DNA of 64,000 bases, taken from the NCBI GenBank assembly GCA_037379345.1, contig CM074519.1:11800699-11864698 (forward strand), given 5' to 3'. Position 1 is the stretch's first letter, and each line of letters begins with the position of its first letter. Made by a program: the position numbers and the translations under genes. The notes under the pieces were generated by a model. The model was given only the letters and a program-made list of their open reading frames with translations. It ran no database searches and had not been told where the DNA came from. Below, piece by piece: positions 27,515 through 60,724 of this stretch. This DNA comes from Perna viridis (Eukaryota).

Positions 27515-28887
27515 AAAATACAAATATCAGTTCTGCTTTCTCATGAAAATTGAGTTGTTTGAGCATGTTATTACTGCAAAAATCTGAGTAGTCAAGACTT
27601 GTAGAAATCAGGGGTCAACTGAGGTAAATAATTGTGTCACTGTAAGACTGACAGACAGACTGGAGTTTCAGAGGTTAAGTACGTTAACAGTGGGCAGAGA
27701 TATAAAAAAAAAAATACAAAATTCGATCAGAAATATAACTTGAAATCTTTCCCCTGCAATTTTGACATTTAGCAATCTGTTTGGTCAGGATTTAAGTTTT
27801 GTTGCTTAAAATGGTTGTTAGACAGTTCTTTTTCGAAAAGATTTCATTGTAATTCTATGCTTTGTATAGACTTTTGTATGTAAGTTATTTCATATTGAGT
27901 AACACAAGCTTGGCCAAAAAACTTCTTGAAAATTGCAATAGACATTATAAGCACAGCATTTTATACAGAATCAAGAAAACGACTTTAAACTAAGGAAACC
28001 AATTGAAATTTACCAAATAATTATAACACGTACTTCAAAATATTACTTTGGAACATTTTACTGTTTTCAAAATACATTAAATGTTATGATTTCAACCACT
28101 TAAACATGAAACCAACATCCCAACTTGAAGTTTCCTGACTTTTACTTAAGATTGTTGTTTATGAACTATTTGCCAAAATAAATTACTGTAAAGAATGGAA
28201 TTGAACACTTATTTTATATAACATAAAACCATCCAACGTGTTGGATTACCTTGCAACAGTATAACAATAAATTTAAAGGTGTTATATTGTATGTAATTAC
28301 TTTCCGTTATTGGAAATGATTCAAATTTTCTGACTTGTACCGCCTAAATAAAGAACTGTAGAGAAAACATGATACCAGTTTTTTTTCCCACACGATTAAT
28401 GTGTGGCCAATTATAACAAGACGAGAAGAATTTGTCTAATTTTAGCACCTTCAAAAGAAATGCCCTAGAAGATCATAAGATCGTTTGATAATTGTGTCAA
28501 AATAATTTTCCTGTTCAATAAGTGCCAGAAGTATTTCAAGTACTGTTTAACAAAAATATTTGTATGTAGGAAACATTATACAAGCATGTCTACCAAATGC
28601 AATTATTTATGCATGTTTGACAACAGCAATTGTTCTGAAATTGAAGGGTTTGTAAAAGTCACAAAACCATAGTAGTAATTTGATCTTAGTTTTTTTCAAG
28701 CTCTTTTAAATTTGAAGAGTTTATTGTGTGATAATTCAAATTTGGTTAGCCCTACCACAAAAATGTCTTTTAGCTAAATATTTAGTATCTCTGTAGACAG
28801 ATTCCTCTTAATAGATTTAACCGAATTCCCTTTGCATAGCATCAGTCATTGACATCCTCATCAAAATTATCTTCCTTGACAACTTAC

Positions 28888-28980
28888 CTTTCCGAATCCA
28901 GAGAAGAAATTTTTGACATCTTCTACTGTCGTTGATGCAGACAAACCTCCAACAAATATTTTTTTTGTTCTAGTGACCAT
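28888..28980 (-). CDS. msi: Musashi exon 6 ([31 protein letters not shown]; RRM2 RNP2), 93 nt
   Basis: Acceptor attctttcag|, donor AAG|gtaagt. Diagnostic [14 protein letters not shown]; lies within ORF 28867..29058. Confidence 0.98.
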
Positions 28981-34949: not shown

Positions 34950-37900
34950 CAGGACAAAAAATGAATTTCTCAAAACTCATTATCAAAATATATTCTACAC
35001 ATGTAAAACTAAACAAAATAAAAAAGCTACAAGAATATTAACACAGAATTTGGTAGAAGTTAAACCCTTCCAGAAAACTTAGCATAAAAATACAAATATT
35101 TCTTTTTCAAACATTTCTTCAGTCCAATTATATTTCTGCATGGATTAACCCTATCTAGTTCAACAGTCATTATATGGTCTTGGGACATATACAAACATCT
35201 ATTTATCCTATACCCATTGAAAGAAAAGACCTTGTTTGAATCAAGGTTATTTTCTTCAAATGTCAAGTTTGATCGGTTAAATGTTTAAGTTAGAGATATT
35301 CATTACGTCCTGACAAGTTTACTTTTCTTTTATAAAATGAATGGCCTTTCTATCCCAGTGACAAATCCTTCCGTAAAGAATGCCGTAGTTGTGTTGTCTG
35401 TGTGTCTCTCTGATGGCTGAATGTCAGGCGACAGCATCGGCTCGGCAAGATCAAATCTGCTTAACTTAGAATAACAGAAACTTTGTCTCATAACCCCCAA
35501 ATAAATTCCTTCAGAATATGTCCTCTTATCATATGGTCCAATCTACTCACCAAAAAATTGCTCTTCAAAGAATCATTTATTCTTTCCAAAGGTGGACATT
35601 TTCAAAGATGAAAACATTAAAGAAAAACAATAGCCAATTGTTCACAGATTTTATCACAAGCAAACAAGCAGCAATCAAGACAAATCTTAATTTATCCAAA
35701 ATTCTAATATTCTTAATAACAGTAATTGTTTTCACAGGACATTTTTTTTTGTAGTGATTACCTCAAGTTGACACTGAACTTATGTTCGTGTTTTTGATTT
35801 CTTCAATGTTAATATAGAGATTTAGTAACAGATTGTGCAACATGAAAGTGATATCAACAATATAATGGAAAACAAGTTCAGCATTGTTGTCCCCACAATG
35901 CAACACTTTCAGTCGACTTTGTACACATCAACTTCTATAAAAGTTCCACTCATAGATAAAATGCTTTGATGTATTCTTTCTCAACTGGGTAACACCTATC
36001 TAGTATCTGGTTGTGTCATATTATAGCCATGGACAAGTTTTTGTCACTAACATCAGCATCGTCAATTACATAACCAAGTGTGATGCAATTCACATAATGT
36101 ACATCTAGGATATGACTCATGTATATATACCCAGTTTAAAAGACCTATCAATGCGAGATTACACAGCAAACTTCCACAAAAATTTCCCCAAACATTCTCA
36201 CTGTATCCTAACAATACATTTACCAATGGTCTTTTAACATTGTTGTTTCTACTTGTTTCAGCGATACGCCTGCCAACTTCGCCATTTCCTTTAACGCAAA
36301 AATGCCAAGCCAGAGTTAAATACAGCAGGAATAGAATTTGACGGAAATAGTACTTATACAAATTTCTGTCTTTCTCAGTTATCTAATAATGCCAAACTGT
36401 GAAAAACTTGGAAATAGTTAACAAGACATTTTTTCTCCCAAATTGTCAGTTTTGTCATGACTGATTGATTCAATACTGCTTGTTCACATTTATTTTCTCT
36501 TCAAACAGGATGAAAATTGACCTTAATTCTTTTATAACTCTCTTACAATTCTAGATTGAGTTGTAGTATCCCAAACACTGCAGTGTGGCTGCAAGATATC
36601 CAATTTGTTTATGGAAAGATGTTTATATGGAACCAAATTTGACTTGACAGGTTGTCGATACAGCACAAAAGATTTGGTAAGCGATCTGGAGGAGTTACTC
36701 CCTTATGTGAAAAAGGACCTGTTTTGGCGATAATTGATTTTGGTCATATACCTTGTCATATTTGTTTTCGATCTTTATCAATATTGACAAGCAGGATTAA
36801 AGCCGAGGGTCTTCATGACAGAAAAACAAACAAAAATCTTAATGGACTGAAAAAGGAAAGTGAGCAGAGACATGATGGATCAAAACTTGTTAAGTTCTGA
36901 TCCAACAAGATTCAATTACATGTAAGGAATTCCTATACTCGTACTGTGACACAATTGTGGTTAGAAAAAGATGGGGAGTGTCTCTTCAATTCATTATTAA
37001 AATGACAAAAAAAAACGTTTTTCAATATTAATTATAAATTTCACTTCAATCATCCTTATACAAGTATCTTTTCATGTTCCAAGTTTCAAAACATTTTAAA
37101 AATTACTTAATAAAAAAAAAAAATATCCTTTAATGACTACAGGTCTAAATATAGGTAAACAACTTGGTGAATACCGGTACATTAAGAAATAAACTTTTTT
37201 CACCTGCACGCTTGGTTAAGTTTTATTATCGGAAATGGAATTGCTTCATTTCAGCTTCATCATCAGAAAATTAATCCATAGTTTGTTGCCTGAATAAAGA
37301 TACCGACCACAAAACCACAGTCCTTATTTTGTTATTTTGTCGTATGTTAGGATAAACTTGATATTCAAGATCAAAATCACGTCTGAGAAATTTTCTTCTA
37401 TCACAAGAAAATCGATAAAGATGGATGACCCCAAACAATAATTCTCCCTCTGAAATAAACCAATCCAAGCAACAAAAAAAGATTTCTTTAATGTTCAGCA
37501 GTATTTGAGTTGCAATAATTGACTATTACTTTCATATCAGAATCAGACCAATAAAACACAAGACGGCAGGAGCCACAATCAGGCAGCTCAAAACATCACA
37601 TCAATAAGAATTGTAAGGAGTGGAAACAGTGTAGTGGCTGTTACAGAAGGATCAAATTAAAAAAAGTTTGAATCAAAAATTTGTTCAAGATTTCAAAAAC
37701 TAAGAGACAAAAATCTGTGATTTTTATCCTAAAAAAAAATCATAAGTCAGGATTGAAAACTTCAAACATTTATGTAAAAGAATCCAATAAATCCCCCCCA
37801 GTCTTCCTCAGAGTTCAGAATCCTGTATTGCACTTCTGTCAAATCTTAAGTTTTAATATGCCTGATCAAAACTATTTTTATTTATATACAAATTATTGAT

Positions 37901-38645
37901 TTTTGCTGTTTATTTCTAAAATATACTTGTTCTTAATTCCAATTCAATACAACTGATTCATAAACTGTTATAAGTTTTGATATTCTACAACTAGAGTACA
38001 AGGGTATTTAAATCAATACTATTTTTCATTTTTGAAATTTTATTTATCCAAAATTCATATTTTTGCTATTTTGTCATCTATAATTATTTGAACTTAAATG
38101 TTAATAGTCCCATTTTAAAAATCATCAAATAAATCTGGCCAAAAAATAATTCCCACAATGCAATCACAGTTGTACAGTCTGCTTCTAAATCCTTTTAAAT
38201 GTCAGAGTGTCTTGTGTTTCTTAGATAACATGGAAAAGAGGATTATGAGAATAAATCTTGCCAAAACTGCATTATACTTCCTTAACTTAAAAATGATACA
38301 TGTACATGTATAACATGAGAAATCATTATTATCAGTAAACCGAAATTAACAATCAACTACAAGATGTCAAGTTCCGGGGCACATTCTAAGAATACACTAG
38401 TAGCTGTATGAACTTTAATCTAGAATCATTGTAGAGAGTGCATGTACTTGCGCCTACATATAACTGCCCTACTAATGATCTTTAATTACGTGTATTTGTA
38501 TTAACAAATCAGAAAACTCACATTGATCAAAAGAGAACTTAAATCCATGTCAACTCGACTTGAAGTCGAGGATTTAAAAATTTCAAAAAAAAATAAACTT
38601 TTTTTTCAAAAATGTAATTTCTCAAAGTTTTTAAAATAAACTAAC

Positions 38646-38705
38646 CTTTGGTTGTGCTGGAGTCACAGGCATGGGAGTTGCGATAGCTGTTGTTAAATTC
38701 ATCAT
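38646..38705 (-). CDS. msi: Probable alternative first coding exon of Musashi (MMNLTTAIATPMPVTPAQPK), phase 0, joining exon 6
   Basis: 60 nt from ATG to donor AAG|gttagt, in frame with exon 6. Last 12 nt GCACAACCAAAG vs exon 5 GCACAGCCAAAG (same AQPK, one synonymous difference). In-frame TAG upstream at 38759-38757; Inr-like ATCAGTT at 38846-38840. Confidence 0.7.
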
Positions 38706-40004
38706 GATTAATCTACACTTTTTTAACTTCCAACAAAAAAAATCCACAAAAATATTCTACAAACTACTTAACTGGTACAAAAAATTTTGCCTCTGCTCTC
38801 TCTAAAGCCTACGAGACTAATGTCGGTGGTACAAGCTAGAACTGATCTTGTATTCGATCTCTCCGACAATAGTTGTGTAAACATATGATTTGAGCAAACA
38901 TTTTATAAATACCCCTTGTTATTAACTTATGAATACTGAAGTACTTGTACACGAAAAATAATTATTCCTGTATTTCAATAGGGATGACAACATACGCAAT
39001 AAGGATGACCAAGTTAATGAAGGAATTTTGGTATTATTAGAAAACAAGTAATTACGAGAACGTATGCAATAAAACGCTGTTTAGTATGTTAATTAGGCCA
39101 ATTACAAAAACATTTGATATTAGGGCAAAAGAAAGTCTTTTTTCCATTTCAAATTAAAAAAAAAAGGTTTGTTCCTGAGGTCCTTGCTGTTTGTTTAAAC
39201 AAGGTCATAATTGACTCAATTTTGGAAACTTTTCTTTCAAATTCTCCTAATAAAGTTTCTTTCAAACTTGAATTTAATAAGTTTTAGACATGAATCACGA
39301 AGCCATAGACTCATTGTTAGAGCTTTAAAAAATCGCTGTAAATTGGGAGGACCTTTGTCAACAAGGTCATCTGTGTAATAGAGCGAAGCTGGATAAGGAA
39401 ATTTGGTTTAAATATCACTACCATTTTCATTATACATGACTGTCGACTATATCTGATGACAGAACTGCAGAAGAAGTAGAAGTAGGTATAAACCCTCATT
39501 TTGGAAGTACAATATCAACAAAAAAGTGCAAGTAAATATTTAGCTTTACCAAACAAAATGTGATTTTTTGTAAAGTCTTCAAGGAGGAACATGTAGAATT
39601 TCATTTTAAGTGTGATCTTTTCTCTACAAATCATTGCACTAATTCTTGCGTTTGATTTTGAAGGATTCCATGAGCCATTTAAGACACATGTATACATATC
39701 ATATGTGAATACAAAAGAATTGCAAAAATTGGACCTTATTTTCATCAAACAGAAAGCGTTCTTATCTGTTTTGCGCACTTCAGATGCACTTCTGCACCTA
39801 ATGTGTGAAGAGTTTTGTACACAAATTATAATCTTTTTAAACTTTTCAACCAGGTTTGCAAGTAAAATTTTATTGCAGTTAAAATATACACTGGCCTCAC
39901 TTGAATTTGTGTAGCAGTTACCAAGAGACAGATAGATCTTTGTATAAAAATTTCCGACCTATCATAAAAACATTTTGTTTTATGAGCCCTGTTCTCAATT
40001 TATA

Positions 40005-40018
40005 GTAACCATGGCAAC
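40005..40018. promoter_or_regulatory. RFX X-box in intron 5
   Basis: GTAACCATGGCAAC (reverse GTTGCCATGGTTAC), near-consensus 14-bp X-box about 1.3 kb upstream of the alternative ATG. Confidence 0.55.
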
Positions 40019-40929
40019 AGCTTGCCTGTGAAACAGACGAAAACACTTTCTGGACCAAGATCATGGGAAAACTGACGTCTGCAAGAAATGGATCAAACTT
40101 TTCACAATAGCATCAAAACCTGTGGTAAATTTTCTTTTCATTATGTGTGAAAAAAAGTAAACAATGATCGGAAAAGAAACAAAATAAAGAGACAAAAGCT
40201 TTTAGCTAGCATACCTAAATAAAACTAAGTAAACAAGTTGGACAATATTTACTAAACTTTTTATTTACCACGCTTTTTCATTTCAATCCAAGAGTTTACT
40301 TTCAATATTTGCCCAAATTGTGTAAACATTTATGCTATTTCCTTTCGTTCAACAACCCAGCAGAAAACTATTATTCAACCTGTTTTGTAATAGTTTGGTG
40401 AATTTCTATTAAATTTTTCAGTGAAAAATTCAATAATCTACAAATATATGCTATTCTTATGGCTCTAAAATGCTTTTGCCAACAGCACAAACATTGATTT
40501 TTAAAAATAACATGTTATCATTTGAGTCACTTGAGCACATGAAAGAACTCCTTGCAAAAAAAATTCAATTGGAACACAAATTAAAAAGGACTTTTAACAC
40601 AAACATCCCATTAACTTAAAATGTCATAGTGGTAAAATAGTTCAGTTAAATATTAAATGTTTGATCCAATAATAGCACAATTTTAATTTTTTTAAAGGGA
40701 AATAATCCATACAAATTCAATCTTCTAAAGAAGACAATTCATCATAAAAATGGATTTACACAACACTTCAGCCTACCGACAACTTCAATAAAAATAAACT
40801 TATAAAATAAAAAATTATCTGTAATCAATAATTTTTGTGTAAAAATAAGAGACGCTTTGTGTATTAACGATACTAGAAACTAACTCCTTATTTTGAACTC
40901 AACAGTTAGTACAAGTCAAATATTCTTAA

Positions 40930-41070
40930 AGACCTGGCATCAGTTTCATAAAAAGTCGTAAGTGTGAAATAGATCGTAAATCATGACGTCACAATGCTAT
41001 TTTAGTTTATGACGTCATTACTTACGATCAACTTTACACTTACGACTTTTTGGTGAAATCGAGACCTGGC
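40930..41070. mobile_element. Palindromic (foldback) MITE
   Basis: Two ~50-nt complementary arms (AAAAAGTCGTAAGTGT...GATCGTAA...TGACGTCA / TGACGTCA...TTACGATC...ACACTTACGACTTTTT); AGACCTGGC repeated at 40930-40938 and 41062-41070. Confidence 0.75.
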
Positions 41071-43715
41071 TGAAACTACTGAAAATTGATTAAATATGGC
41101 TGATGCTTTCAAATGTATAATGAAATCCTACAGTGAGAGTCCTAATTAACAGCACAAAGAGCTTTCTGTGGGAGAAAATCCCCCTCTCATCCCAGGCTAA
41201 CGATTCTATCAAAAATAGGAATAATTCTAGATACTACCAATGAATACATTGCTTGCTCAATTGGCCAGTTAAACACAAAACAAATTCTGATAAAAGCCAA
41301 TGGATAAAAGTTCTGTCAAGCTAATCATGATTAAGAGTTAAAAAAAGAAAAGACGTCAAATTACAAGATTGGTTTAAAAACAGATTTTACTAAGAAAGAA
41401 TTAAATTCAGCAAAAAAAAAATCTACATGTACTATAACATGTACGTGTATTATACATGTTGATTGAACTTTTTAAAACCATTTCTTACATGTTTTATGAT
41501 AGCATTCAATACCCCTGAATCATCGTTTTAGTTTTTCTGATAATTGAAAATTTTCTATTCATGTAACTGTCTCTTTAAAACCCTTTCAGTTTTAACTTTT
41601 CAAACCATAGGTGATAAATTAATGTCATTATTGAAAACTTGTCCAATTAAATTTACAAATAAGGCTATTTATTCCTAAATAAAAATGTAATAGTCCAAAT
41701 TTATCTAAATTTTGAAATCAATATGACATATTTATAAATGAGAATTACGTACAAAACAAATCAATATCACAATTGATAAAATGTAAGGATATTAATTTTC
41801 TACCTATATTGAACATTTGCCACAAGTTTAAACAAAAGCGGTCGAATAATTTCATTTGAGCAGCTTATATTTCTTATCACTACATCCCTGCTTAATACCA
41901 TTGATAAACACAGTTTTCGCGATCAGCCATATTGCTCCTAGAAAGGAAGGAATTTTGGCTCTCTTATGTCTGCCAAACAATAGCACTAGATCAAGCAGTA
42001 TATATACATTAGAATACGTATTGATCACTTAGTGGCCTGGACACGATTTAATTGAAACTCTTCAATTGCCTTCAATAAAAACGTCCTGATATTTTTCCGC
42101 TCGTTCAACGTTCAATTTCTATTTATGGTTGCCAAGTGTGGAGAAATAACTAGATATTGATTGTATAGTTGTCCGATGGTCAGGGAGATGATCGCTCAAT
42201 GCCTACATCTTCAAGATGAATGGCAGTGGTGACTTGATGAACTTGACCTTCCAACCACTAATAATGGCAGCCACATTGGGTCTTTAGAAATGTGAGGTAT
42301 ACCATGTGAACGAGTGAACCATGGACACATGGACACATCTGCCTTACAGGCATTAAGAAACAAGACCCTCAATTTACATATGAATGATTTTTTCACAAAG
42401 TAAAAAACATGGAGGTCATATAAAATGGTAATAAGTTTTTGTTTGACATTCACTGAAAGCTAACTCAATCAAGTCATGAATTAAAGATTGGAATTTAATT
42501 ATTATTCCTCGGAACGACATTTATTATCCCACTTTAGTGCAAAAGTATTACGTTGAATAAAAGTTCTAGTGATATTAAGCTATTTACATGTTACTTATGT
42601 AGGCTTTGGTAAGCAAAGTCGAGGGTGTATTAAGATTTTAAACGAAATTGAGTCATGATGCATTTTCTGTCAGACAAATCAATGTGAAAAGTACTTAGTT
42701 GGATCTCAGCGGCTCTGAAAAAAGTATATTGCACGACTGATCTGAAAGGGACAATAACAAAACAGATAAATGTAAAAATGGAGTCCTCTAAAGAATTGTT
42801 TTCTCTTAAACAATTTTCCAAGGAACACTAAATGAAATTTCTAAATTTGATCACAAATTGATTTTAAAAGCAAGATTCCATCACATTAAGGATGGCTACA
42901 ATCTCTCTCAAGTTTGCCTAATACACTTGATTAGCTTTGTCCCCGGCAAACAGCACATTTAAGTCAATTTATCGTTTTCTAACGATTTTCTCTCCGTCTT
43001 AAATGAACTGATGTAGAGGAATTTGTAAGGGATAGAATTTGCAGCTGGATGGCGCTTAAAAACCAAGCTGAAGAGGACAGAGTTCTTGGCAGTTCCAAGA
43101 GAGTTTGATTTAATTTTATAGCTTTCCACTGACAATTGTATCAACATCCCATTTACGTTTGGAATCAACTTCAAGGTTTTAAGGAAATTCTAAATTGCAT
43201 GTTTAAGAATATCAATAGCCAAGAATAGTGAACTACTGAACCGCTAAGTCTCCCCTCGGTTAGTATCAAAGTAACATATTCTATCCATTTCTTATATCCG
43301 ATCATCGATTTGCTGTAACAATAAAAGCTGACTTATCACACATATATGGCTCGCATGACAATGTAACATCAATAAAGTTCGGGAATGATTACAAGACGGA
43401 ACAAACCGCTTGTCTTCATATGCATGCAACAAATTCACGCTTCATGAAAGCTTTGTGGGAAAATGAACGATTCAAGATTCAAGTTGATAAGGACAAGGAA
43501 TCGAAGAATAGGCCTCCATACCTGTTTCATGCATTTGTTTTCGCTTCATAAAGTTTTTGTGGAAAATTGATTTAAGAATTACCGTAAAAAAAAAGGGCAA
43601 ACAAGAAAACAAGTGATTTGCCTGGTTATGACATAACAATGTTCATACTTCGAAAGATCAATGAATAGTTGGGAATAACCCTCACTGAAAAGTCTGAAAT
43701 ATGCAAACATTGAAC

Positions 43716-44524: not shown

Positions 44525-44719
44525 CCCTACCGGTGCACCTGGTCCATGCTCCCAGTTTTTAGTGGAGTCTGAGTTGCTCATTTGCTTTTGTTACTTTGTA
44601 TGTATGATTTTAGTTACTTTATGTTCTTCATGTGTATGTCTTTTTTCCATGTCTGGTCTTTGTCCCTGGACTACATTATTTTGATTACCACTATAACCTT
44701 GGTTCCTTTGATTACTCTT
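44525..44719 (+). mobile_element. Shorter copy of the same retroelement 3' end, opposite orientation
   Basis: CCCTACCGGTGCACCTGGTCCATGCTCCCAGTTTTTAGTGGAGT...TTGATTACTCTT aligns with the reverse complement of ~26376-26571; same terminus. Confidence 0.85.
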
Positions 44720-44723
44720 CCAA

Positions 44724-44978
44724 AATTGGCCCATTTCAGGGGTGTTAGTATCAAAGTCAGTACCTACTAAGATTGGTCCATTTAAAATTCAAGGGGGTGT
44801 TTTGTAAGCGAGTAAGTGTCTACAAGAATTGGTCTATTTCAGGGGTGCTCGTGTCAAGATAACCAAGTACCCCAAAGGATTGGTCCATGTGTCAAAAATA
44901 CCAAGTTCCTCTAAAGATTGATGCATTCAACCGGGTGTTCCTGTCAAAACAAGTAAGTACCTTAAAGGACTGTTCCAT
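44724..44978. repeat. Degenerate ~45-55-bp tandem array
   Basis: Five to six decayed units of ATTGGTCCATTT...GGGGTGTT...TCAA...AAGTACC, abutting the retroelement copy. Confidence 0.65.
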
Positions 44979-46791: not shown

Positions 46792-46833
46792 CTTTGGCTG
46801 TGCTTTTCTTGGGAATGCTACTTTAGGATCAAC
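46792..46833 (-). CDS. msi: Musashi exon 5 (VDPKVAFPRKAQPK; end of RRM1 and linker), 42 nt
   Basis: Acceptor atatcctcag|, donor AAG|gtaagt. Matches Musashi IDPKVAFPRRAQPK. Confidence 0.97.
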
Positions 46834-50018: not shown

Positions 50019-50103
50019 CACTTTGGAATCTAGTTCATGTGGACATGCTTTGAGCACCTTGTCAACATCATTAGGATCTTGAAAGGTGACGAAACCAAAA
50101 CCC
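50019..50103 (-). CDS. msi: Musashi exon 4 (GFGFVTFQDPNDVDKVLKACPHELDSKV; RRM1 RNP1), 85 nt
   Basis: Acceptor tttgttttcag|, donor |gtatgg. RGFGFVTF RNP1 and HELDSK motif; lies within ORF 49953..50222. Confidence 0.97.
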
Positions 50104-53100
50104 CTGAAAACAAATTTAAAACACAAGATTAGTAAAGCATCAAAAAATAATGCATGTACACGACAAAGACAAGAAAATTGGAAGAAAAAAACCAGCCATA
50201 ACATGTATGATATTACATACAAACATGGTACTTAATGTAAGAAAACAAGTGCATGAAATCCAATGAATTATTGGCCCATATTTATTTCTTTATACTTCTT
50301 TTAATATGATGAAGCACATTTTAAGTATGAATATTCTATCTTGAATACAAATTATCATAATAATAAACTTGTATTGTGTAAATGTGTGGGATTTACTTGT
50401 GGGATCAATCAGTGCCCTAGTCTGTGGTCTGTGGTGTGATATATGTGTTTTAAACGCTTTCCAGAACACTAGTTAAATTATGTGTACTGGTAATTTTAAG
50501 TCGCCAATTGACTGCCATATTTTGACAGATACATGTACATGCAGGATGTAAAATCTTAAAATGTGGAAACTCAATCTTAGTTTCAAGACCAACAATGAAC
50601 TTGAGTTTAAAGAATGGCCAATTATAGGTGATTTATTTCGTCAATCCACAGAAATTTCACAATTAACCATAAAGACATCAATTCTAAGTATATACACACT
50701 ACACAATTAAAGGGTAGTCTGAGAAACAATATACATGTTTGGCAACAAAAATATACAAAGAACCCAGAAAAAAACAAAGGTAGTTTTGCTCAGTTTTTAA
50801 GAGTATGCGTACACAGTATATCTTTAACAGTATAAGTTTGCATGTTATAGAATAAGTTACAACTAACACTTTTCCAATTCTTTATTATCCATCTTAACCT
50901 AATCATAAAATAACCAAATAAAACAATCCTATGGTTAAAGTTGAACTTGGTTTTTACAGTGACCCTACCCCCTCCTTTTTGTACCATTAACACTTACAGT
51001 AAACTAAGGGATAACTCAATTTCATCTGCATTCCATCGCATTCTGATGAAAGAAATCAACACCTTTGAGTCTGATTTCATCTCACCATTTATCATATCTT
51101 GTGGATTATAAATCATATGCCTATGTAAACTGGCTGTCGGCCGAACAGCTGGATCTAAACTCAATCATATTATATTCTCCTTAAATGAAAGGGGCAACTT
51201 TCTCCATTGAAAGCATCCAAATTGAAATATACGCTCTACTTTTTAAAGCTTTTTTTTTTTAATTTTTCCATGACAGATTGTATAAAAATAACAGGGACAT
51301 AATTTGAAGGTCATCTTAGACAAAGTTGAGGGCAGTAGAAATAATGCAAATGTTTATACATGTACATGTAGGTGGTAAATAAATATATTAAGAAATGGCT
51401 TCATCTTTTTAAACTGAACTATTCACATGTAGCTAAAGGAGTATGTTCAGAAAATGTCAAAAATCAGCCCCAAAAACCAAAGTGTTTCAAATAAATTTGA
51501 TAATTGTATAATTTACTATTTGAATATATGCCTTCGTTAAAAAACAAAGTTTCATGGCTGTTAATGTCTGTGTTTCACTAAAATTGTAGATGAAAATAAA
51601 GCAAAATCAGAAAATAAAGTCGAATTGTGTTAGGGTGCATTTGTTGAACTCTTTGATATTTATACAAAAATAGCCTTCTATACTATCACAACTTCTGACA
51701 AAAGATTGTGTTGTTCATAGCTTACACTCTATATTCTTGGATTAAAAAATATACCCCTAATCCTCTCATTTATGTGAAAATTTCTTGAAAACTTTGTGGA
51801 AGTAGTGTTTTGTACCCTCCTTGTTACTAAATTATGACCCAATAGCTTGTATTTTCTGCATATTAGTATTCAGATAATATTTTAACTTTAAAAAAGGCAA
51901 TTAGAAAATTTCAAATTGTAAGTTGAAATTTCATGAAAATAAGAAACAAGAGTTAGTGAATTTACTCCTTTAGAAACTGTAAGACTAACAAAACAATTAA
52001 ATTGTTAGAAAAAGGAAGGTAAAAAGACTTCCACTACCAAAACAATCTCTATAAATGTAGTTTGAAGTACATTGCCATTTAGCTGTTGAACATGTACATA
52101 AAATGTACATGTACACTAGAAACTTTACAACTGAAGTACAAAAAACATGGTGGGCAAACATTTTTTCGTAAACAAAGCATTTTCTAAAGCAAATAATGAT
52201 TAAATAGTGATAAAATTGATTGACTTCATTGTGCCCTCCCAAATAAAATTCTTAACTTTACCCATAATTACATCCCCAATTGACCTTGACAAAATCACAG
52301 TCTTTAACAGTCCACCTGTATGTTTATTGGATAATACTATCAAATTCACATCCAAACATTGATTAAAGTCACAATAAATCCATGTATTAGATTCCATTAG
52401 GGTATGTAGGACTAACATTAATCTCTGAAATTTACAACCCAACAATAAATACATGTATTGTAGTAAATTTTTAATGTTTAATTTCTGACAAAGGTCCCTG
52501 TATGCATTAAATGCATTTAACTGCATCGTGTATGCACAGATGAATGATAAAAGATAATTTCCTATTTTTACCTTAATACAATATAAGTATAATGAACAAT
52601 CAACATTTATAATAATAGCGGCAATGTGAATACATGTTATAGCACTTTAATACATCTTTTTGAAATTGGAATAAAAATTGGCTCAAACAAAAGAGATTTG
52701 TTTTCCCATGTATCATTTGTTTCGTCTCCATGACTTCCTACACTTTTTCTGAATGTTAAACAATTTATAATAAAATATGCTACATTTTAACCTAACAATT
52801 AAACCACAATGCATCAAAGTGTAAACTAACAATGTTTCTCACAGCTTTTTAGAAATTATTTTTAAAATTTAACATGACTTATGCCCATTTTGCATTGTTA
52901 TAACAAGTCTTTGAAATTTCCCAATGAATAATTATCAGAATTTTTATTAATTTTCATGTCGTAGTTTATCAATTTGAGTTTATTATGCACTTTTCTCCAT
53001 TTTTTTGAATATTTTGCCAGACAAAGAAAGCTTTTTAGACAAAGCTTCCCATTACCTGTAATTACATGTACAACATATATATCGAAATGATGATATACAT

Positions 53101-55004
53101 GTAAGTCTTAATTTAAATGAAAGACATACTTTTCAAATGTATCTACCAAAAGATAAGCTCTTTACATTTTAGAAATTGTACATGTAGAAATTGCAATAAC
53201 ACATGCAGAAAGCATCCTTGCTTGTCAAATTTATATTTTCAAAAAAGCAGATGCACTTAGAATTCAACAAAACACAAAGAAAATCATTTTTATCAAAACA
53301 AAGAAGTTTTCGACTTTTCAAGGGTATTACGTAAGACAACTCCCACAACTTAAGTACGATAAAATAAATGGGTGAGTTTATCGCCTTTGGTCTTATATCA
53401 AAGAAATCGAAGATTTCTCAGATCTTTGAAATTCTTCCCCAACCATATGCAAAAAGATGTTCCCTTGCCAACTTAAACTTTCCCATGCCTCTGCAATCAT
53501 GTGTGCCGATGCTTTTTCAATTGATGATACACCTAATTCAAGAGATAATTACCATTTTCTAATCATCGTTAGGTATGCCTAAGTAGTCTTACTCTGTAAC
53601 TTCCGCTAATTGTTAATAGCTAATTCAAGAGCTACTTCAATCGTTATATTTTTTCTCTTCCCGCAGTTTTAATGGCAAATTAATCCTAAAGGTTATTAAT
53701 AAATGTCATAATGCGTGCGAAAATCCAGCAACAAAATCATAGTGTGGATTCTTTCATGGACAAGACTATATGTATGTACATGTATACATAATACTTGATC
53801 CATTATTTGCCATATTATAAATTTCCAAGTGACTTCATTTTAAAATTATCTGTTTTTAATGTGGTGGGAAACATGAAGTCATTTCATCTTATATTTACAA
53901 AATTTACACAACATTTATTTCTTAAAGGCAGTTTTACTGTGTGCCTCATATTCAACTTTTAATCTGCATTCCTCAATCAGCTGTGATGTTGGCATGGCAA
54001 ACTATGCTAATCTAATGGCTGCTATTTCTTTACATGTAGGATAACATATGTGTATATTGCATGTTTATCTCACAGAATCCAACTGTTCTGTGTACAGTCA
54101 TGCCTCAGTATTAGTTTAAACATTTCTTTTTAATTTTTTAGCCTGAACCTTTTTTTTTCAAAAAATAATGATGCTCATGTTCATTTGAAATCATACCATT
54201 TTGCCTAATTTACAACAGCTAGATAATTATTGAAATGCTACAGACTAGTTGGACAACTTAGGGCTTTATCGAATGCAGGAGCACAATACCACCAATTAAT
54301 TCTTCCTGCTGGTATACATTACATTAATTTGATTGTTGAAAATGTAACTTTTTTATATCTCACAGCGAAATTCACAGGCAAAAGGCATACCCCAGTAAGC
54401 ACAGACAAGATTACAAAACAAGTTTTGTGGCTCAAGCCTGAATGTGACCGTAATAAAACTGCCTCCACATCCTAGTTAAGTAAGTAAAAAGTTAAAACTT
54501 TCTGGCAGGAGTTCTGATAATATCTAATCCTCAAGAACAGCAAATGTTGTGAAGTCCTTAAATTATTCTTCCTATAGTTTAAAAATAACAACGACATTTG
54601 AAATTTACCAAGTCAAAATTGTTTGGAATATTGAAAATCATTCAGACATTGCAATCCATCACGAAACAACTTACATTTCAACATACAATGAAGGAAATAA
54701 ATGTAAAAATATGATAAAAAGATAAAGAGAATTTGAAATACATGTACATGCACACTATGTACCACATGAACAAAAGAAACTAACTTCTATACCACAGAAA
54801 AATTATAATGTACTTTTCTCGGTATTCAACCCTCTTACATGAAAACCAAAGAATGGACATTTCTTTTAACTTTTAATCTCTCAGTTCAGTATCTAAGTAA
54901 TGACTTTGAACATGTATATTGCTGATAGCCAGTTAAAAAAATATAAACAAGATGGTTTTGTTATATTGATATTGTGTTAAAAATGGGGGGGAGGGGGGGG
55001 GGAT

Positions 55005-55300
55005 TATAGTAAAATCCGTCTAAACCAAAATCCTTCTGGACTTAAAAATTGGTTTGGTTTAGACAAGTGTTTGGTTTAGAGAGGTGTTTGGCTTAGACAG
55101 GTCTTTGGTTTAGACAGGTCTTTGGTTCACCAAGGTTCAAAATACATTCAAATTGATATAAAGGAATTTTCAAAAATGTCTGGTTTAGACAGGGCTTCAG
55201 GTTATTCAGGGTTCAGTTTAGACTGGGCTTCAGATTATTTGGGGTTCAGTTTAGAAAGGGCTTCGTTTATTCAGGGTTCAGTTTAGATAGGTTTCACTGT
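55005..55300. mobile_element. MITE (pogo/Tc1-like ends) with internal tandem repeats
   Basis: Left TATAGTAAAATCCGTCTAAAC, right GTTTAGATAGGTTTCACTGT. Internal ~17-nt (TTTGGTTTAGACAGGTC) and ~33-nt (GTTTAGACAGGGCTTCAGGTTATTCAGGGTTCA) repeat units. Confidence 0.75.
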
Positions 55301-57047
55301 TTCTTTAATTCCCCTTAATAAAAAAAACAAAAAAACAAAAGAGCAAGAAAAATCTATCAAGTATAAAAATTATCAATTCAACATCACTCAGACTCAGGAA
55401 CTTTATAGAGTCAGAAATACTAGACACTACTTATCAATTTTCACTTTGAAGGTCATGAATCTGCAAACCAATGCACAAGAACCAGATTCTATAGAGAATG
55501 TTACATCTTGCCTGGCAGTTGAATCTCAAAAAATCCAGAAGATGTCATCACAGACGGCTACATTGATTAATGGTCTCTAAATATATACTACATGTAACTA
55601 GAACAAACATATATTTTACTGACAGAAATCAACACAGACATTTTTTGTTTACTCTGCATTTTCATGGTATTTGCATGGACTTTTCTTCTTCCATAATTAA
55701 AGTAACATTAGCATGTGTATGTTTAGTTCAGTGTACCAGAACCAGTGGTGTCTTTTAAATTAAACTTGCAATATTTAATACTTAGTGAATATGTACAGAA
55801 ATGTCCCCTGATGTTTGACCTTTAACACTTTTCACTGCTTTTAAGAAGCTGGAAAATGTCTATTCCCTTTAATTCCAAGTCCTTGTATAAATGTTTTATG
55901 TACATGTACTTTTATAAAAATATACATGTACTACATGCAAGTCATTGTTTAATAGACCCAAAATCTGAACTTTTATATCATAATATCTTCACTTACAGCA
56001 ATTTTTTTTCAATTTTGACTTGATGTGAGAGCAACAACAGGTTAAAAAACCTTGAAACATACATGTACAAGCATGCAACAAAAATATTCAAAACAAATCA
56101 AATTTTTCAAAGCTCATGGTAACAATTGGAAAGTTTCAAGCATCATTATATGTGACACAAGCCTATAACCTATCTCCCATTCTCTTGATAACTGAATGCA
56201 ACTTGGGAATTTTATCTTAATTTTTGATTAACCAGGAGAAAATTACTGAGAAATGCTAGTTCAGACAGGTGCAGGTAGCCATGTGGAGAGAATTCCAGTT
56301 AATCTGCATGACATGAAAAATTGGAACAAAGTTGTGAAAAAATGCAGAATCGGTTGGAATGTCTGCACAGACACAGCACAAAATTAATAGAATTTTTTTA
56401 TTTCATGTATTACATGTACAATGCACATTCTATGATTAAGATATATGGTAATTTATTAAATTAAATATTTCCAATAGGTGCTTTTTATATGGCAAAGCTG
56501 GGAGAACAGGAATTCTGTCCTATACATGAGAGGATTTTAGGGTCAGCATGAAGATTCACAGCTGGTGATTTCCAGGTAAGATCTACTTTGACAACTGGAG
56601 ATGGCAATTCTATTGACATATGAATACTTAATCAGAATGAGCAAATCTTGAGCAAAATATATAAATGATTTTAGAGTGGAACAACACCTTCTTACAAACG
56701 TTTGCCTGAAGTATCTAAAGCATTTTCTACAAGATAACAAGACAGATTGCTAATGCATTGACGCATGTTTACATGTATGATACAAGTACATGTATGTTGT
56801 ACAAGGATCCCATTAACATGCAGATAGGGCCTTTTATCTGATCATTCACTTTTGCTAATTGGTCTGATATTATTCTTGTTAATATAACTTATGATAATTA
56901 ATGTGTACTTATAATTGTTTTTGTATGTTTGGTCTATTAATTGTGACTAAATGTACCGGTTTTCTCTCCCATTACCTTGAGTAGCCTTTGTTAAGAGTCA
57001 TAGATTGTGAGAAGTTACTGTAAACAAAAGGTATACCTCAAACTTTG

Positions 57048-57273
57048 AAGAGTAATCAAGGGAACCAAGATTCTAGCAGAAATCAAAAGAATGTAATCCA
57101 GGGACAATGACCAGACATTGAAAACAGACCAACACAACAAAGAACATAAAGTTACTAAAATAATTCATACAAAGTAACAAAAGTAAATGAGCAACTACGA
57201 CTCCACTAAAAACTGGGACCATGGACCAGGTGCACCGGTGGGGTTTAATTAAGCGTCCTCTGCTTTTCTAGAA
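57048..57273 (-). mobile_element. Third copy of the same retroelement 3' end
   Basis: AAGAGTAATCAAGGGAACCAAG...CTCCACTAAAAACTGGGA...TCTGCTTTTCTAGAA aligns directly with 26376-26595. Confidence 0.85.
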
Positions 57274-60181
57274 CATTTATACACAAGATATCTTTTAATA
57301 TCTTTAAAGGATTTTTTTTAACTGTAAAATTATTCATTTATTTTGTAGAAGCCTTTCTAAGAAGGTCAAAAGCAAGAGTGAAAGAATGGCTAACAACAGC
57401 TGAACCTCAAAATAAGCTGTGCTTATAAATAAAAGGCCCATTCTGGCGGGTGGCACCTAGTACAGCAGGTACGGCTATGGTCATACCAATAATTTTTGGT
57501 AATTTTTTGGTACTGCATACCATAATTGAAATTCTTGTCAAAATCTCTTTAAAAGGGGGTATTTTACTTGGTAGCTAGTTATATCTAGTTCAAAAATAGC
57601 AAGGTAATTTTTCTACTGACCAATCGAGATTTCAGTGCTATGCCTCTGATACTGCTAACAACTGACTTCAGAATAGAGGCAACTATCCGAGGAAACACAC
57701 TATGACATGGGCTTACAGAAATTTAGCCATCTACATCTTAAGGAAAATTTGGCATCGAAAAATGTGTGAGAAGAAACTTGGATGATTAAATAAAAATAAA
57801 TCCAAATATTTGTTTCAATATACTGCCTCTTAAAAATATGTGTGTTTAATCAAATTAAAAATGATACAATCACACATACATATGTTCTTTAGAGATTAAA
57901 AGGCAGTTTCAAGCAGCCTGTGACCCCTAGTGTAAGTATGGACAAGACATGCTGAACTTTAGGAAAAAATGTTTAAAGTTTGAGTTCTGAGCTGGTTATA
58001 CTTTTGAAGAGAATTTCTGATTCCAATTACACTATACATCTATAGACAATTTTTCCTTCCAATTTTTTTTTTTTATTAATTCTAATATTAAAATACTATG
58101 AGATTAAACAAGGGGCTACATACATGAACATATATCAAGCTTGAAAACTTTAGTTTTAAGATAAAGTTGTGACCTCCAAACTGGTCAATTTACTAAACTG
58201 ATAAAATATTTTAAGGTCGTGAATTTATTGCTGTGTTTACTTAGAAGGTATAAACAGTGCTGATAAATGGCCAGTAGGTGATACTAAGGTTTCACAATGA
58301 AATATCCCAAAATCTATAAAACGAAAATTTATAAAATGCTTGAAACGTTATATAAGGAAAAAGATTTTGTTGCTTTTAGATTATCGTTGAAAAGTACTAC
58401 ATGTACATACATAAAAACTCCTCGGAGAATGAATGATAGTTTTTGTTGTAGATTGATAGCAAAAGTTTTATGTTTTTATTTTAACATAGAATGCATATGT
58501 ACATGTAAAACCTATGAACTCAATGAAAGATATTTTGCTTGTAATACAAATGTAAATGGGGAACAAGAATTTGATTGAAGGATAATTTTTCATCAAACAA
58601 GTGAATCAGTGAAGCTAACACACTGATAAGCAGTTATATGTACATTAAAATTCAAAACTTAAACAAAATTATACTGGGCTTTATTGAGGGAAAGTTTTAG
58701 GATTTTAAATGAATAGTTCATATAAATTAACCAGAGGAAAATTATCTGACACGATTGAATTTTACATTATATAAGGATGATCACCCCCCCCAAAAAAAAC
58801 TATAAACAGTATATGTTTCTCAGCATTGAAATCATCATTAAGGATGCAATTAACTCTGCCAGGAAAATGCAATAACAATCATGTGCATCTGACATCTGTT
58901 CAAAACAGGCAACTACAGTTACAAATATATGAATCCTCATTTTCTTTCCATGGCAGAGAATCTACTGATTTTCACAGTCTATTTATTATAAGGCTACTAG
59001 CAATTTAAGAGGCAAAATTGTTTATAATTAAGGCTTTCAGCTGTTTTACATTTCAATCTTTTGTCATGATTTTGATTGAAAAAGCATTTGAATAGGATAA
59101 GGTGAATTTGAATTTAGTAATCTTTCTCACTGTGAGAAAATCTGACCTAAACATGAAATTAAATGTTTCAATATAAAAGAACCTTTCATTAATAGTTTTT
59201 CTGTATTGTGGTTATTGGACGTCATTTACTATCAAATATGAATTATACCAAATTCAGTGACTATACAATTTTCTTTATTCCTACAATTCGCACCTGTTTA
59301 GGATTTCAAACCCTATTTTTTACCCCTAATTAAATATCCTTAAAACCAGGATCAACATGCATTTGACTAAATCTGATAGGAAATTTCTGTGATTCACTTT
59401 CTTATGTTATCATGGTGTTATCTCGAAAATGGCGAGATACTATAGAATGTAAAGAAACCTATGTTATCTATACTAAGAACTTGTTAACAACACAGAAATT
59501 CCATTAGTAAACTGACTTGAATTTATCGCATAGAATAGAAAAGAAAACTCCCACTGTGTACAATCAAATGTGTTTTACTTGTAGATGACATGATGTTTGT
59601 CAACTCGATTTGTTACTTTTCCATTTTGTGTATTGGAATTTTAATGAACTTGTAATCTTGTAAGACAATGTCATTCAAAAATGACACAACATATTCAAAT
59701 TTTGACAATGAATAAATTTCCTACATTGTTGAATAGTGTGGCTACATGCAATATGTATGTAGGGGAATTCAAGTTTGGCTTCGAAATTTATGCCCTATTT
59801 GAAATTTCCACAGATCTTTTCATTTAGAAAGGAATTTTTAGATACTTATCACAACAAATGTCATGGTAGTCCAAACTTACACAATGAACCTATTAAAATT
59901 TTTAAAATCGGTTGACTAATATGTTGTAAAAATATCATTAAATTATTTAATTTCCCTATACATGAATTAGACCATTGTGAAATTTTATTAGTACCTTGTG
60001 GTTTTTAACGTATACTCCCAAGAAATTTACTGGATAGTTTAAAATCAATTGTCAATTGTTATGCTCAGAATCAATGCCCGGAGGACTAAGGAAAAACGTG
60101 TGAATGCTAATAATAGAGAGGAAACGGTTTATTGTATTTAAAATCAGTGACCCGTAGCGGAAAATGTAAACAATGGCTTAC

Positions 60182-60263
60182 CGTGAACGTTTGGTAGTGG
60201 GGTCCTTCATAACCATTGCTTCCTTAATTTCTCCAAATTTACCAAAGTGTGCCTTCAATGTTT
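60182..60263 (-). CDS. msi: Musashi exon 3 ([28 protein letters not shown]), 82 nt
   Basis: Acceptor cattttgcag|, donor |gtaagc. Musashi RRM1 motif [11 protein letters not shown]. Confidence 0.97.
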
Positions 60264-60464
60264 CTGCAAAATGAAATAAAGCACACAACTTTGAAACGGA
60301 CCATACTTCGACAAGCACTCGCTGACATTAAATTTAAAGAACTTCCGACAAAAAACTCCACAGAAAACAATTAACGGTATGATATGCTCTATGACCCAGA
60401 ACAACACGAGATAGCGTAAAATTATTGTTGACATTTTTTCAAAAATAGATTAAGCACAACATAC

Positions 60465-60505
60465 CTGCAGTCGTTTGCCACGATAGTCCACCTATGAACA
60501 TTTTC
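60465..60505 (-). CDS. msi: Musashi exon 2 (KMFIGGLSWQTTA; RRM1 RNP2), 41 nt
   Basis: Acceptor tttctttgcag|, donor |gtatgt. Translation matches the Musashi-family KMFIGGLSWQT motif; phases fit exons 1 and 3. Confidence 0.97.
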
Positions 60506-60653
60506 CTGCAAAGAAAAAATACATTTCATTAAGAAAATCTTACGAGCCGGTGACCTAAATCTCCCAAGATGATTGAAATTTGATCGCGTACGCTCACAAA
60601 CAAAAGATCAATCGAGAAAACAACTTAGAAATTCACTTCTAATTCCAACTAAC

Positions 60654-60724
60654 CCGGGATCATTTGGTATATCATCAATGCCATTTGTAGAAATTGGTGA
60701 ATTTTGAGCGGGATCCATCTTCAT
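60654..60724 (-). CDS. msi: Musashi homolog, coding exon 1 (MKMDPAQNSPISTNGIDDIPNDPG; 71 nt, phase-2 end)
   Basis: ATG at 60724-60722 with an in-frame TAG two codons upstream (second ATG at 60718). Ends DPG as in Musashi 'DPGKMFIGGL'. Donor GG|GTTAGT; splices in frame to exon 2. Confidence 0.9.

Follow-up and report, generated by a model that had tools for sequence, protein, structure and literature searches.

Musashi is a much-studied translational regulator of stem cells and the nervous system. According to a review (PMC7982713), RRM1 supplies most of the RNA-binding energy of Musashi and recognition takes place mainly through this domain, and the four human MSI2 isoforms described there (MSI2a-d) all retain RRM1 and RRM2. 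These mammalian isoforms gain their diversity from alternative N- and C-termini, as in the mussel case described below, and none of those covered in the same review lacks RRM1. A literature search returned no paper on an RRM1-less Musashi isoform or on mussel Musashi isoforms. The closest counterparts are computed protein models from Mytilus. One of them, XP_071181401.1 (Mytilus edulis isoform X5)/XP_076108071.1 (M. galloprovincialis isoform X4), named 'RNA-binding protein Musashi homolog 2-like' and referred to here as P0266, starts with MNLTQAIATPMPVTPMQPK (leader MNLTQAIATPMPVTPMQPKMVTRTKK), continues directly into MVTRTKK and has the full C-terminus; it contains one RRM_1 stretch, whereas MSI [Mytilus edulis] CAG2200684.1 (P0153) contains two. 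Here we describe the corresponding exon in a 64,000-nucleotide stretch of DNA from Perna viridis (the window), and we consider it highly probable that it serves as an alternative first exon, transcribed from an internal promoter, which gives a Musashi protein consisting of RRM2 and the C-terminus without RRM1. What is new is the exon in the window species; the isoform is already predicted in the Mytilus annotations, and as a class it is unstudied.

The host gene lies on the minus strand of the window, to which all exon coordinates below refer, and its exons were placed by tblastn with named Mytilus Musashi proteins at 83-100% identity. Exons were queried separately, and natural database proteins alone were used as long queries. 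With P0277 and P0153 as queries, the canonical first exon was found at 60724-60653, exon 2 at 60504-60466, exon 3 at 60264-60181 and exon 4 at 50105-50019; these four exons (50019..60724) encode the N-terminus and most of RRM1, and they are absent from the short isoform. Sequence reading together with tblastn placed the last exon on the RRM1 side, exon 5 (VDPKVAFPRKAQPK), at 46833-46792, the first RRM2 exon, exon 6 (31 residues, MVTRTKK...GFGK), at 28980-28888, and the continuation of RRM2, exon 7 (IEDAMLMFDKQTMRHRG), at 3992-3942. Exon 5, which the short isoform bypasses, ends in phase 0 at 46792 with ...AFPRKAQPK followed by GTAAGT. Exon 6 opens with ATG GTC ACT at 28980, is preceded by tttcag and likewise has a phase 0 junction. 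When exon 6 was compared with solved structures, the top match was RRM2 of Musashi-1 (E 4e-08), and the nearest database proteins of the gene are named Musashi homolog 2-like or MSI. The gene also has the two tandem RRMs and the ...DPKVAFPR.AQPK-MVTRTKK linker of the Musashi/Rbp6 family, and as judged from these sequence features it is a bivalve (mytilid mussel) Musashi. The intron between exons 5 and 6 is 17,811 nt long, and the frame of interest lies inside it.

The first-pass annotation of this DNA had drawn attention to a 20-codon frame with a phase 0 donor, in frame with exon 6, and the features on which it relied are indeed present in the sequence. The frame (MMNLTTAIATPMPVTPAQPK) occupies 38646..38705, with its first ATG at 38705-38703 and its phase 0 end at 38646, and it was recovered by sequence reading, by tblastn and in RNA-like contigs. 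It is followed by the donor GTTAGT (38640..38645) after AAG, at which the contigs of runs X1 and X2 break (see below). Upstream it is closed by an in-frame TAG at 38759-38757, so that it is open back to 38756, and this open part contains two in-frame AGs, the first of which follows a T-rich tract. The acceptor-like sequence ttttttgttggaag ends at 38727 and would delimit an in-frame unit of 81 nt, and the motif ATCAGTT is found at 38846-38840. The last four codons encode AQPK and differ from those of exon 5 only by CAA vs CAG, a synonymous change. With tblastn, both P0266 and P0153 matched the window at 38702-38646, that is, from the second ATG (38700..38702) onwards. This ATG appears to be the initiator conserved with Mytilus, as P0266 opens with MNLT and P0153 reads IRKMNLT at this place, while the first ATG aligns with the K of the P0153 cassette. 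In the 723-Mb assembly, 38500-38900 has no second copy. With regard to the donors of the gene, GTTAGT is common to the canonical first exon (60648-60653) and the alternative exon; the others are GTAAGT in exons 5 and 6 and GTATGT in exon 2. We take the GUUAGU donor to agree with the Musashi binding consensus.

The Mytilus proteins were reached by comparing the 31-aa exon 6 with protein representatives, which gave 1309 matches, followed by a search with P0006 that led to P0153. Counted from the second Met, 17 of 19 residues of the window leader are identical to those of P0266; the window species differs by an extra ATG codon ahead, by T for Q at residue 5 and by AQPK for MQPK. In P0153 the same exon peptide is present as a linker cassette, ...AFPRKAQPK-IRKMNLTQAIATPMPVTPMQPK-MVTRTKK..., which has three extra codons (IRK) and keeps RRM1; this cassette form is absent from the X1 and X2 contigs. 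The 90% cluster of P0153 has ten members, in which the exon is used once as a cassette (P0153) and once as a leader start (P0266), while AQPK continues directly into MVTRTKK in the remaining eight. Among the RefSeq XP members of this cluster (n=7), six skip the exon and one starts with it. When residues 1-40 of P0266 were used as a query, the P0153 cluster was the one cluster in which the leader was recovered (78 bits, all other matches <=47). No homologous leader was found outside Mytilus among proteins of 208-661 aa, a search that is blind to isoforms within 90% clusters and to shorter fragments; the 41-aa stop-to-stop frame 38756-38634 gave no candidate among short protein fragments, a result of little weight as the eligible proteins were of 23-72 aa. 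By sequence comparison, the proposed RRM1-less isoform is one that is already modelled in two Mytilus species, with the window exon as the orthologue, and the earlier description of the exon as 'hidden' does not hold.

A frame and a donor are not in themselves rare in this intron, as its 17,811 nt contain two frames that open with ATG, span 15 codons or more and run into a donor with a score of 5/7 or higher. The sole other ATG frame with a donor-like end lies at 44618-44734 (minus strand), has 39 codons and ends with AAA followed by GTAACT. The combination of AQPK and a subsequent GT, on the other hand, is limited to two sites when both strands of the window are considered, exon 5 and the candidate itself. 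No place in the intron matches the end of exon 5 better than this site, with 17 agreeing letters over 19 nt, and none of 500 shuffles reached the score of this match. It had been suggested that the exon arose by partial duplication of exon 5, and we rejected this origin: a local alignment of the two exons, in which 80 nt before and 60 nt after each donor were included, covered these 19 nt only, six of them donor bases, and Mytilus has MQPK instead of AQPK. The idea that the exon rebuilds the AQPK linker is thus true of the window species and not a general rule, given MQPK in Mytilus and leaders without QPK in a scallop and a limpet.

To assess expression, public runs were looked up with the 201-nt span 38646-38846, represented by 17 sampled words, and the stretch was present, in whole or in part, in nine of the 24 runs listed. 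Three runs of organism A, each from a different study, held 1.00 (X1), 0.82 (X2) and 0.77 (X3) of the sampled words; they comprise 70-90 million letters of contigs each, which is transcriptome-sized, and their RNA label is a guess. X4 and X5 each held 0.12, X5 being from a second organism (organism B), and the other runs with matches, X6-X9, are of unknown kind, with X6-X8 (658-934 million letters) approximately genome-sized. Thirteen further RNA-like runs of organism A (X12-X24) contained next to none of the sampled words, indicating that expression of the exon is restricted or low.

Contigs of X1, X2 and X5 and raw RNA-Seq reads of X10 were then aligned to 37400-43399 with a likeness threshold of 85%. 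Of the 234 letters in the X1 record, 1-213 fit the window from 38858 down to 38646, ungapped and with 0 mismatches; of the 316 letters in the X2 record, 1-271 fit from 38916 down to 38646, ungapped and with a single mismatch (38788). Past 38646 the two records run on for 21 and 45 letters, respectively, that are unlike the intron. A two-piece X5 record shows the position rising as the window coordinate falls, as expected of minus-strand records, and for this reason X1 and X2 must begin upstream of the exon end; neither has a 5' overhang beyond its upstream end at 38858 or 38916. A break at exactly 38646 followed by unlike tails is the signature of a used donor, and as it was observed in contigs from two different studies, splicing at the donor proposed earlier is confirmed. 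The exon also stands out as an island and not as part of a general intron signal, since X2 had depth in only 6 of 30 bins over the 6 kb, three of these being a repeat. In X10, the depth over 38600-38799 was 1.22 (first mate on +) vs 0.23; this bias derives from a handful of reads, and it suits minus-strand RNA without being proof alone. These results show that the exon is transcribed, bearing in mind that the RNA label of X1-X3 is a guess.

The contigs also define the minimum extent of the transcribed leader (5' UTR), 38706..38916, over which X1 (from 38858) and X2 (from 38916) are collinear with the window. The leader contains the cassette acceptor at 38727/38728, which is unused in both contigs. 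ATCAGTT (~38843) had been put forward as the transcription start site and was ruled out, as X1 and X2 both begin upstream of the motif. If transcription begins further upstream than these, the leader also includes a pair of upstream ATGs seen in the X2 contig, one at 38901 with a frame of 21 codons and one at 38884 with a frame of 38 codons, which could lower translation. No splice joint into the exon was listed in the X1 and X2 contigs, within the aligned range of 37400-43399 and at low depth, and the organism B contig is collinear with the window up to 39681; the exon may be longer than X1 and X2 show, or another, non-coding exon may precede it. In addition, X1 has small contigs at ~39150-39400 (depth 11.6), 37600-37799 (depth 4.07) and 43016-43204 (depth 2.7), at none of which X2 has a contig. 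The pieces at ~39150-39400 may form part of a longer leader or of a non-coding exon that lies upstream in this transcript.

Organism B, a relative that is approximately 10% diverged, allowed the conservation of the frame to be examined. Aligned over 38644-39443, its X5 contig has 77 differing letters and 11 gaps. In codons 1-10 it departs from the window at 38676, 38682, 38688 and 38691, each time by a synonymous third-position change, and there is no indel; the comparison covers these ten codons, as differences within ~32 letters of the contig end are unlisted. The 55 bases upstream of the ATG, in contrast, carry 8 substitutions and 4 one-base deletions, and two of the deletions, at 38726 and 38729, fall in the proposed cassette acceptor and its first codon. 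The probability that four of four differences fall at third positions by chance is about 1 in 81, a pattern that is suggestive of coding constraint.

Among other molluscs (79 proteins from 10 clusters), RRM1-less models with leaders unrelated to that of the mussels were seen twice. In Argopecten irradians isoform X16 (P0392) the short leader MGKTT, and in Patella vulgata isoform X4 (P0424) the short leader MACWLKARPAKQRVALGRSSPQ, is joined to MVTRTKK, and neither leader contains QPK. A further Argopecten irradians model, X17 (P0389), begins inside RRM2. As far as such models can be relied upon, P0392, P0389 and P0424 hint that internal promoters of Musashi are widespread in molluscs. A barnacle model (P0119) begins at MVTRTKK and may be partial. 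In Ostrea edulis, five models (P0009, P0184, P0199, P0208 and P0222; isoforms X7, X24, X13, X9 and X2, respectively) have an unrelated cassette, LTDLVQTVEAEVLSEANQSKKRK, inserted where AQPK would meet MVTRTKK, showing that the inter-RRM intron hosts alternative exons in other bivalves too.

The reading as an alternative first exon for an RRM1-less Musashi, which the first-pass annotation had favoured, is supported by three independent lines, namely the RNA-like contigs that break at the donor, the exclusively synonymous differences in organism B and the RefSeq Mytilus isoforms in which the leader is joined to MVTRTKK. The same annotation had offered as an alternative that the sequence is an in-frame 81-nt cassette which lengthens the inter-RRM linker. 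Such a cassette would lie between exons 5 and 6 in the transcript of a two-RRM protein and would be entered through the 38727 acceptor or, alternatively, close to the ATG. Such usage does occur in one M. edulis model, P0153, with the exon between AQPK and MVTRTKK and two RRM stretches, and it would agree with the frame being open to 38756 with two in-frame AGs, the first behind a T-rich tract, as well as with the unrelated linker cassette that Ostrea edulis isoforms have at the same junction. However, since the X1 and X2 contigs are collinear through 38727, and also through the AG at 38712-38713, up to 38858 and 38916, the exon is not an 81-nt cassette in these two runs. The region concerned is also poorly kept in organism B, where the 8 substitutions and 4 one-base deletions of 38706-38753 include those at 38726 and 38729, and if the AG had the position that it has in M. 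edulis, the unit in the window would measure 67 nt and lose the frame. Moreover, the cassette is found in only one of ten members of the Mytilus cluster, all seven RefSeq XP members either skipping the exon (six) or starting there (one). We consider cassette usage improbable in the window species, where, as the aligned range (37400-43399) ends short of exon 5, it is perhaps a minor product.

It could also be argued that the exon is transcribed and spliced and yet non-coding in practice, either as part of a regulatory intronic transcript or because upstream ORFs block the MMNL start. The two upstream ATGs of the X2 contig (38901 and 38884), and the scarcity or absence of the sampled words in the majority of runs, would fit this; it is at odds with a leader in which all four visible organism B differences are synonymous third-position changes next to an indel-rich upstream region, in which 17 of 19 residues are common to the window species and Mytilus, and whose phase 0 end is the one needed for exon 6, and we regard it as very improbable. 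That the frame is merely a chance intronic ORF, sampled from unspliced pre-mRNA or contaminating DNA, is scarcely credible. A second ATG frame with a donor does exist in the same intron, X1 and X10 show slight depth in neighbouring intron bins, and X1 and X2 were classed as RNA by guess; nevertheless, in contigs from two separate studies the fit ceases at one and the same base, at the predicted donor, and gives way to unlike tails, and Mytilus proteins carry homologous leaders, and on these grounds we rejected this explanation.

Taken as an alternative first exon, the sequence suggests the following course of expression. Transcription would start at 38916 or further upstream, from a putative internal promoter in the 17.8-kb RRM1/RRM2 intron. 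The donor at 38646 (AAG followed by GTTAGT) would then be spliced to exon 6 at 28980; we infer this join in the window species from the phase 0 of both boundaries and from the Mytilus models, which join the leader to MVTRTKK. The presumed initiator is the second ATG, which is conserved, or else the first one, and translation from it would place a leader of 19-20 residues directly before MVTRTKK, and the predicted product would contain RRM2 and the whole C-terminal region without RRM1. As RRM1 gives most of the binding energy according to PMC7982713, such a form would be expected to bind RNA weakly while its C-terminal partners are kept. Its most likely function would be that of a weak-binding competitor or modulator, with a partner-binding C-terminus and no high-affinity RNA targeting.

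If this is correct, the conserved RRM1-less isoform would be a natural separation-of-function variant, with which one could study what RRM2 and the C-terminal region do by themselves and whether promoter choice is a means by which animals adjust Musashi activity. For genome annotation the consequence is an ordinary one, in that the exon is to be annotated here as it is in Mytilus. A broader and rather doubtful proposal is that the internal intron promoter is an old, recurrent feature of mollusc Musashi genes (mussels, scallop and limpet, with differing leaders), that it yields RRM2-only natural antagonists or retargeted forms in particular tissues or stages, that the mussel leader is selected, and that the GUUAGU donor, common to both first exons, could let Musashi influence which of them is productive.

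Two further elements were noticed in the surrounding introns. A repeat of ~120 nt at 40930-41070 had a depth of 350-430 in X1 and X2, and of 44-54 plus 26-38 in the X10 raw reads, and shows numerous differing loose ends at either flank as well as many variant letters; it has the appearance of an interspersed repeat that is present in many transcripts. In addition, an open stretch, YGFVTFTNPSISEQLLLSNMHK, at 28606-28671 (minus strand), ~200 nt downstream of exon 6, resembles the RNP1-like part of an RRM. Its tblastn match was weak (E 0.95-2.6), and judging from the sequence the likeness is probably due to chance, or possibly the stretch is a decayed exon copy.
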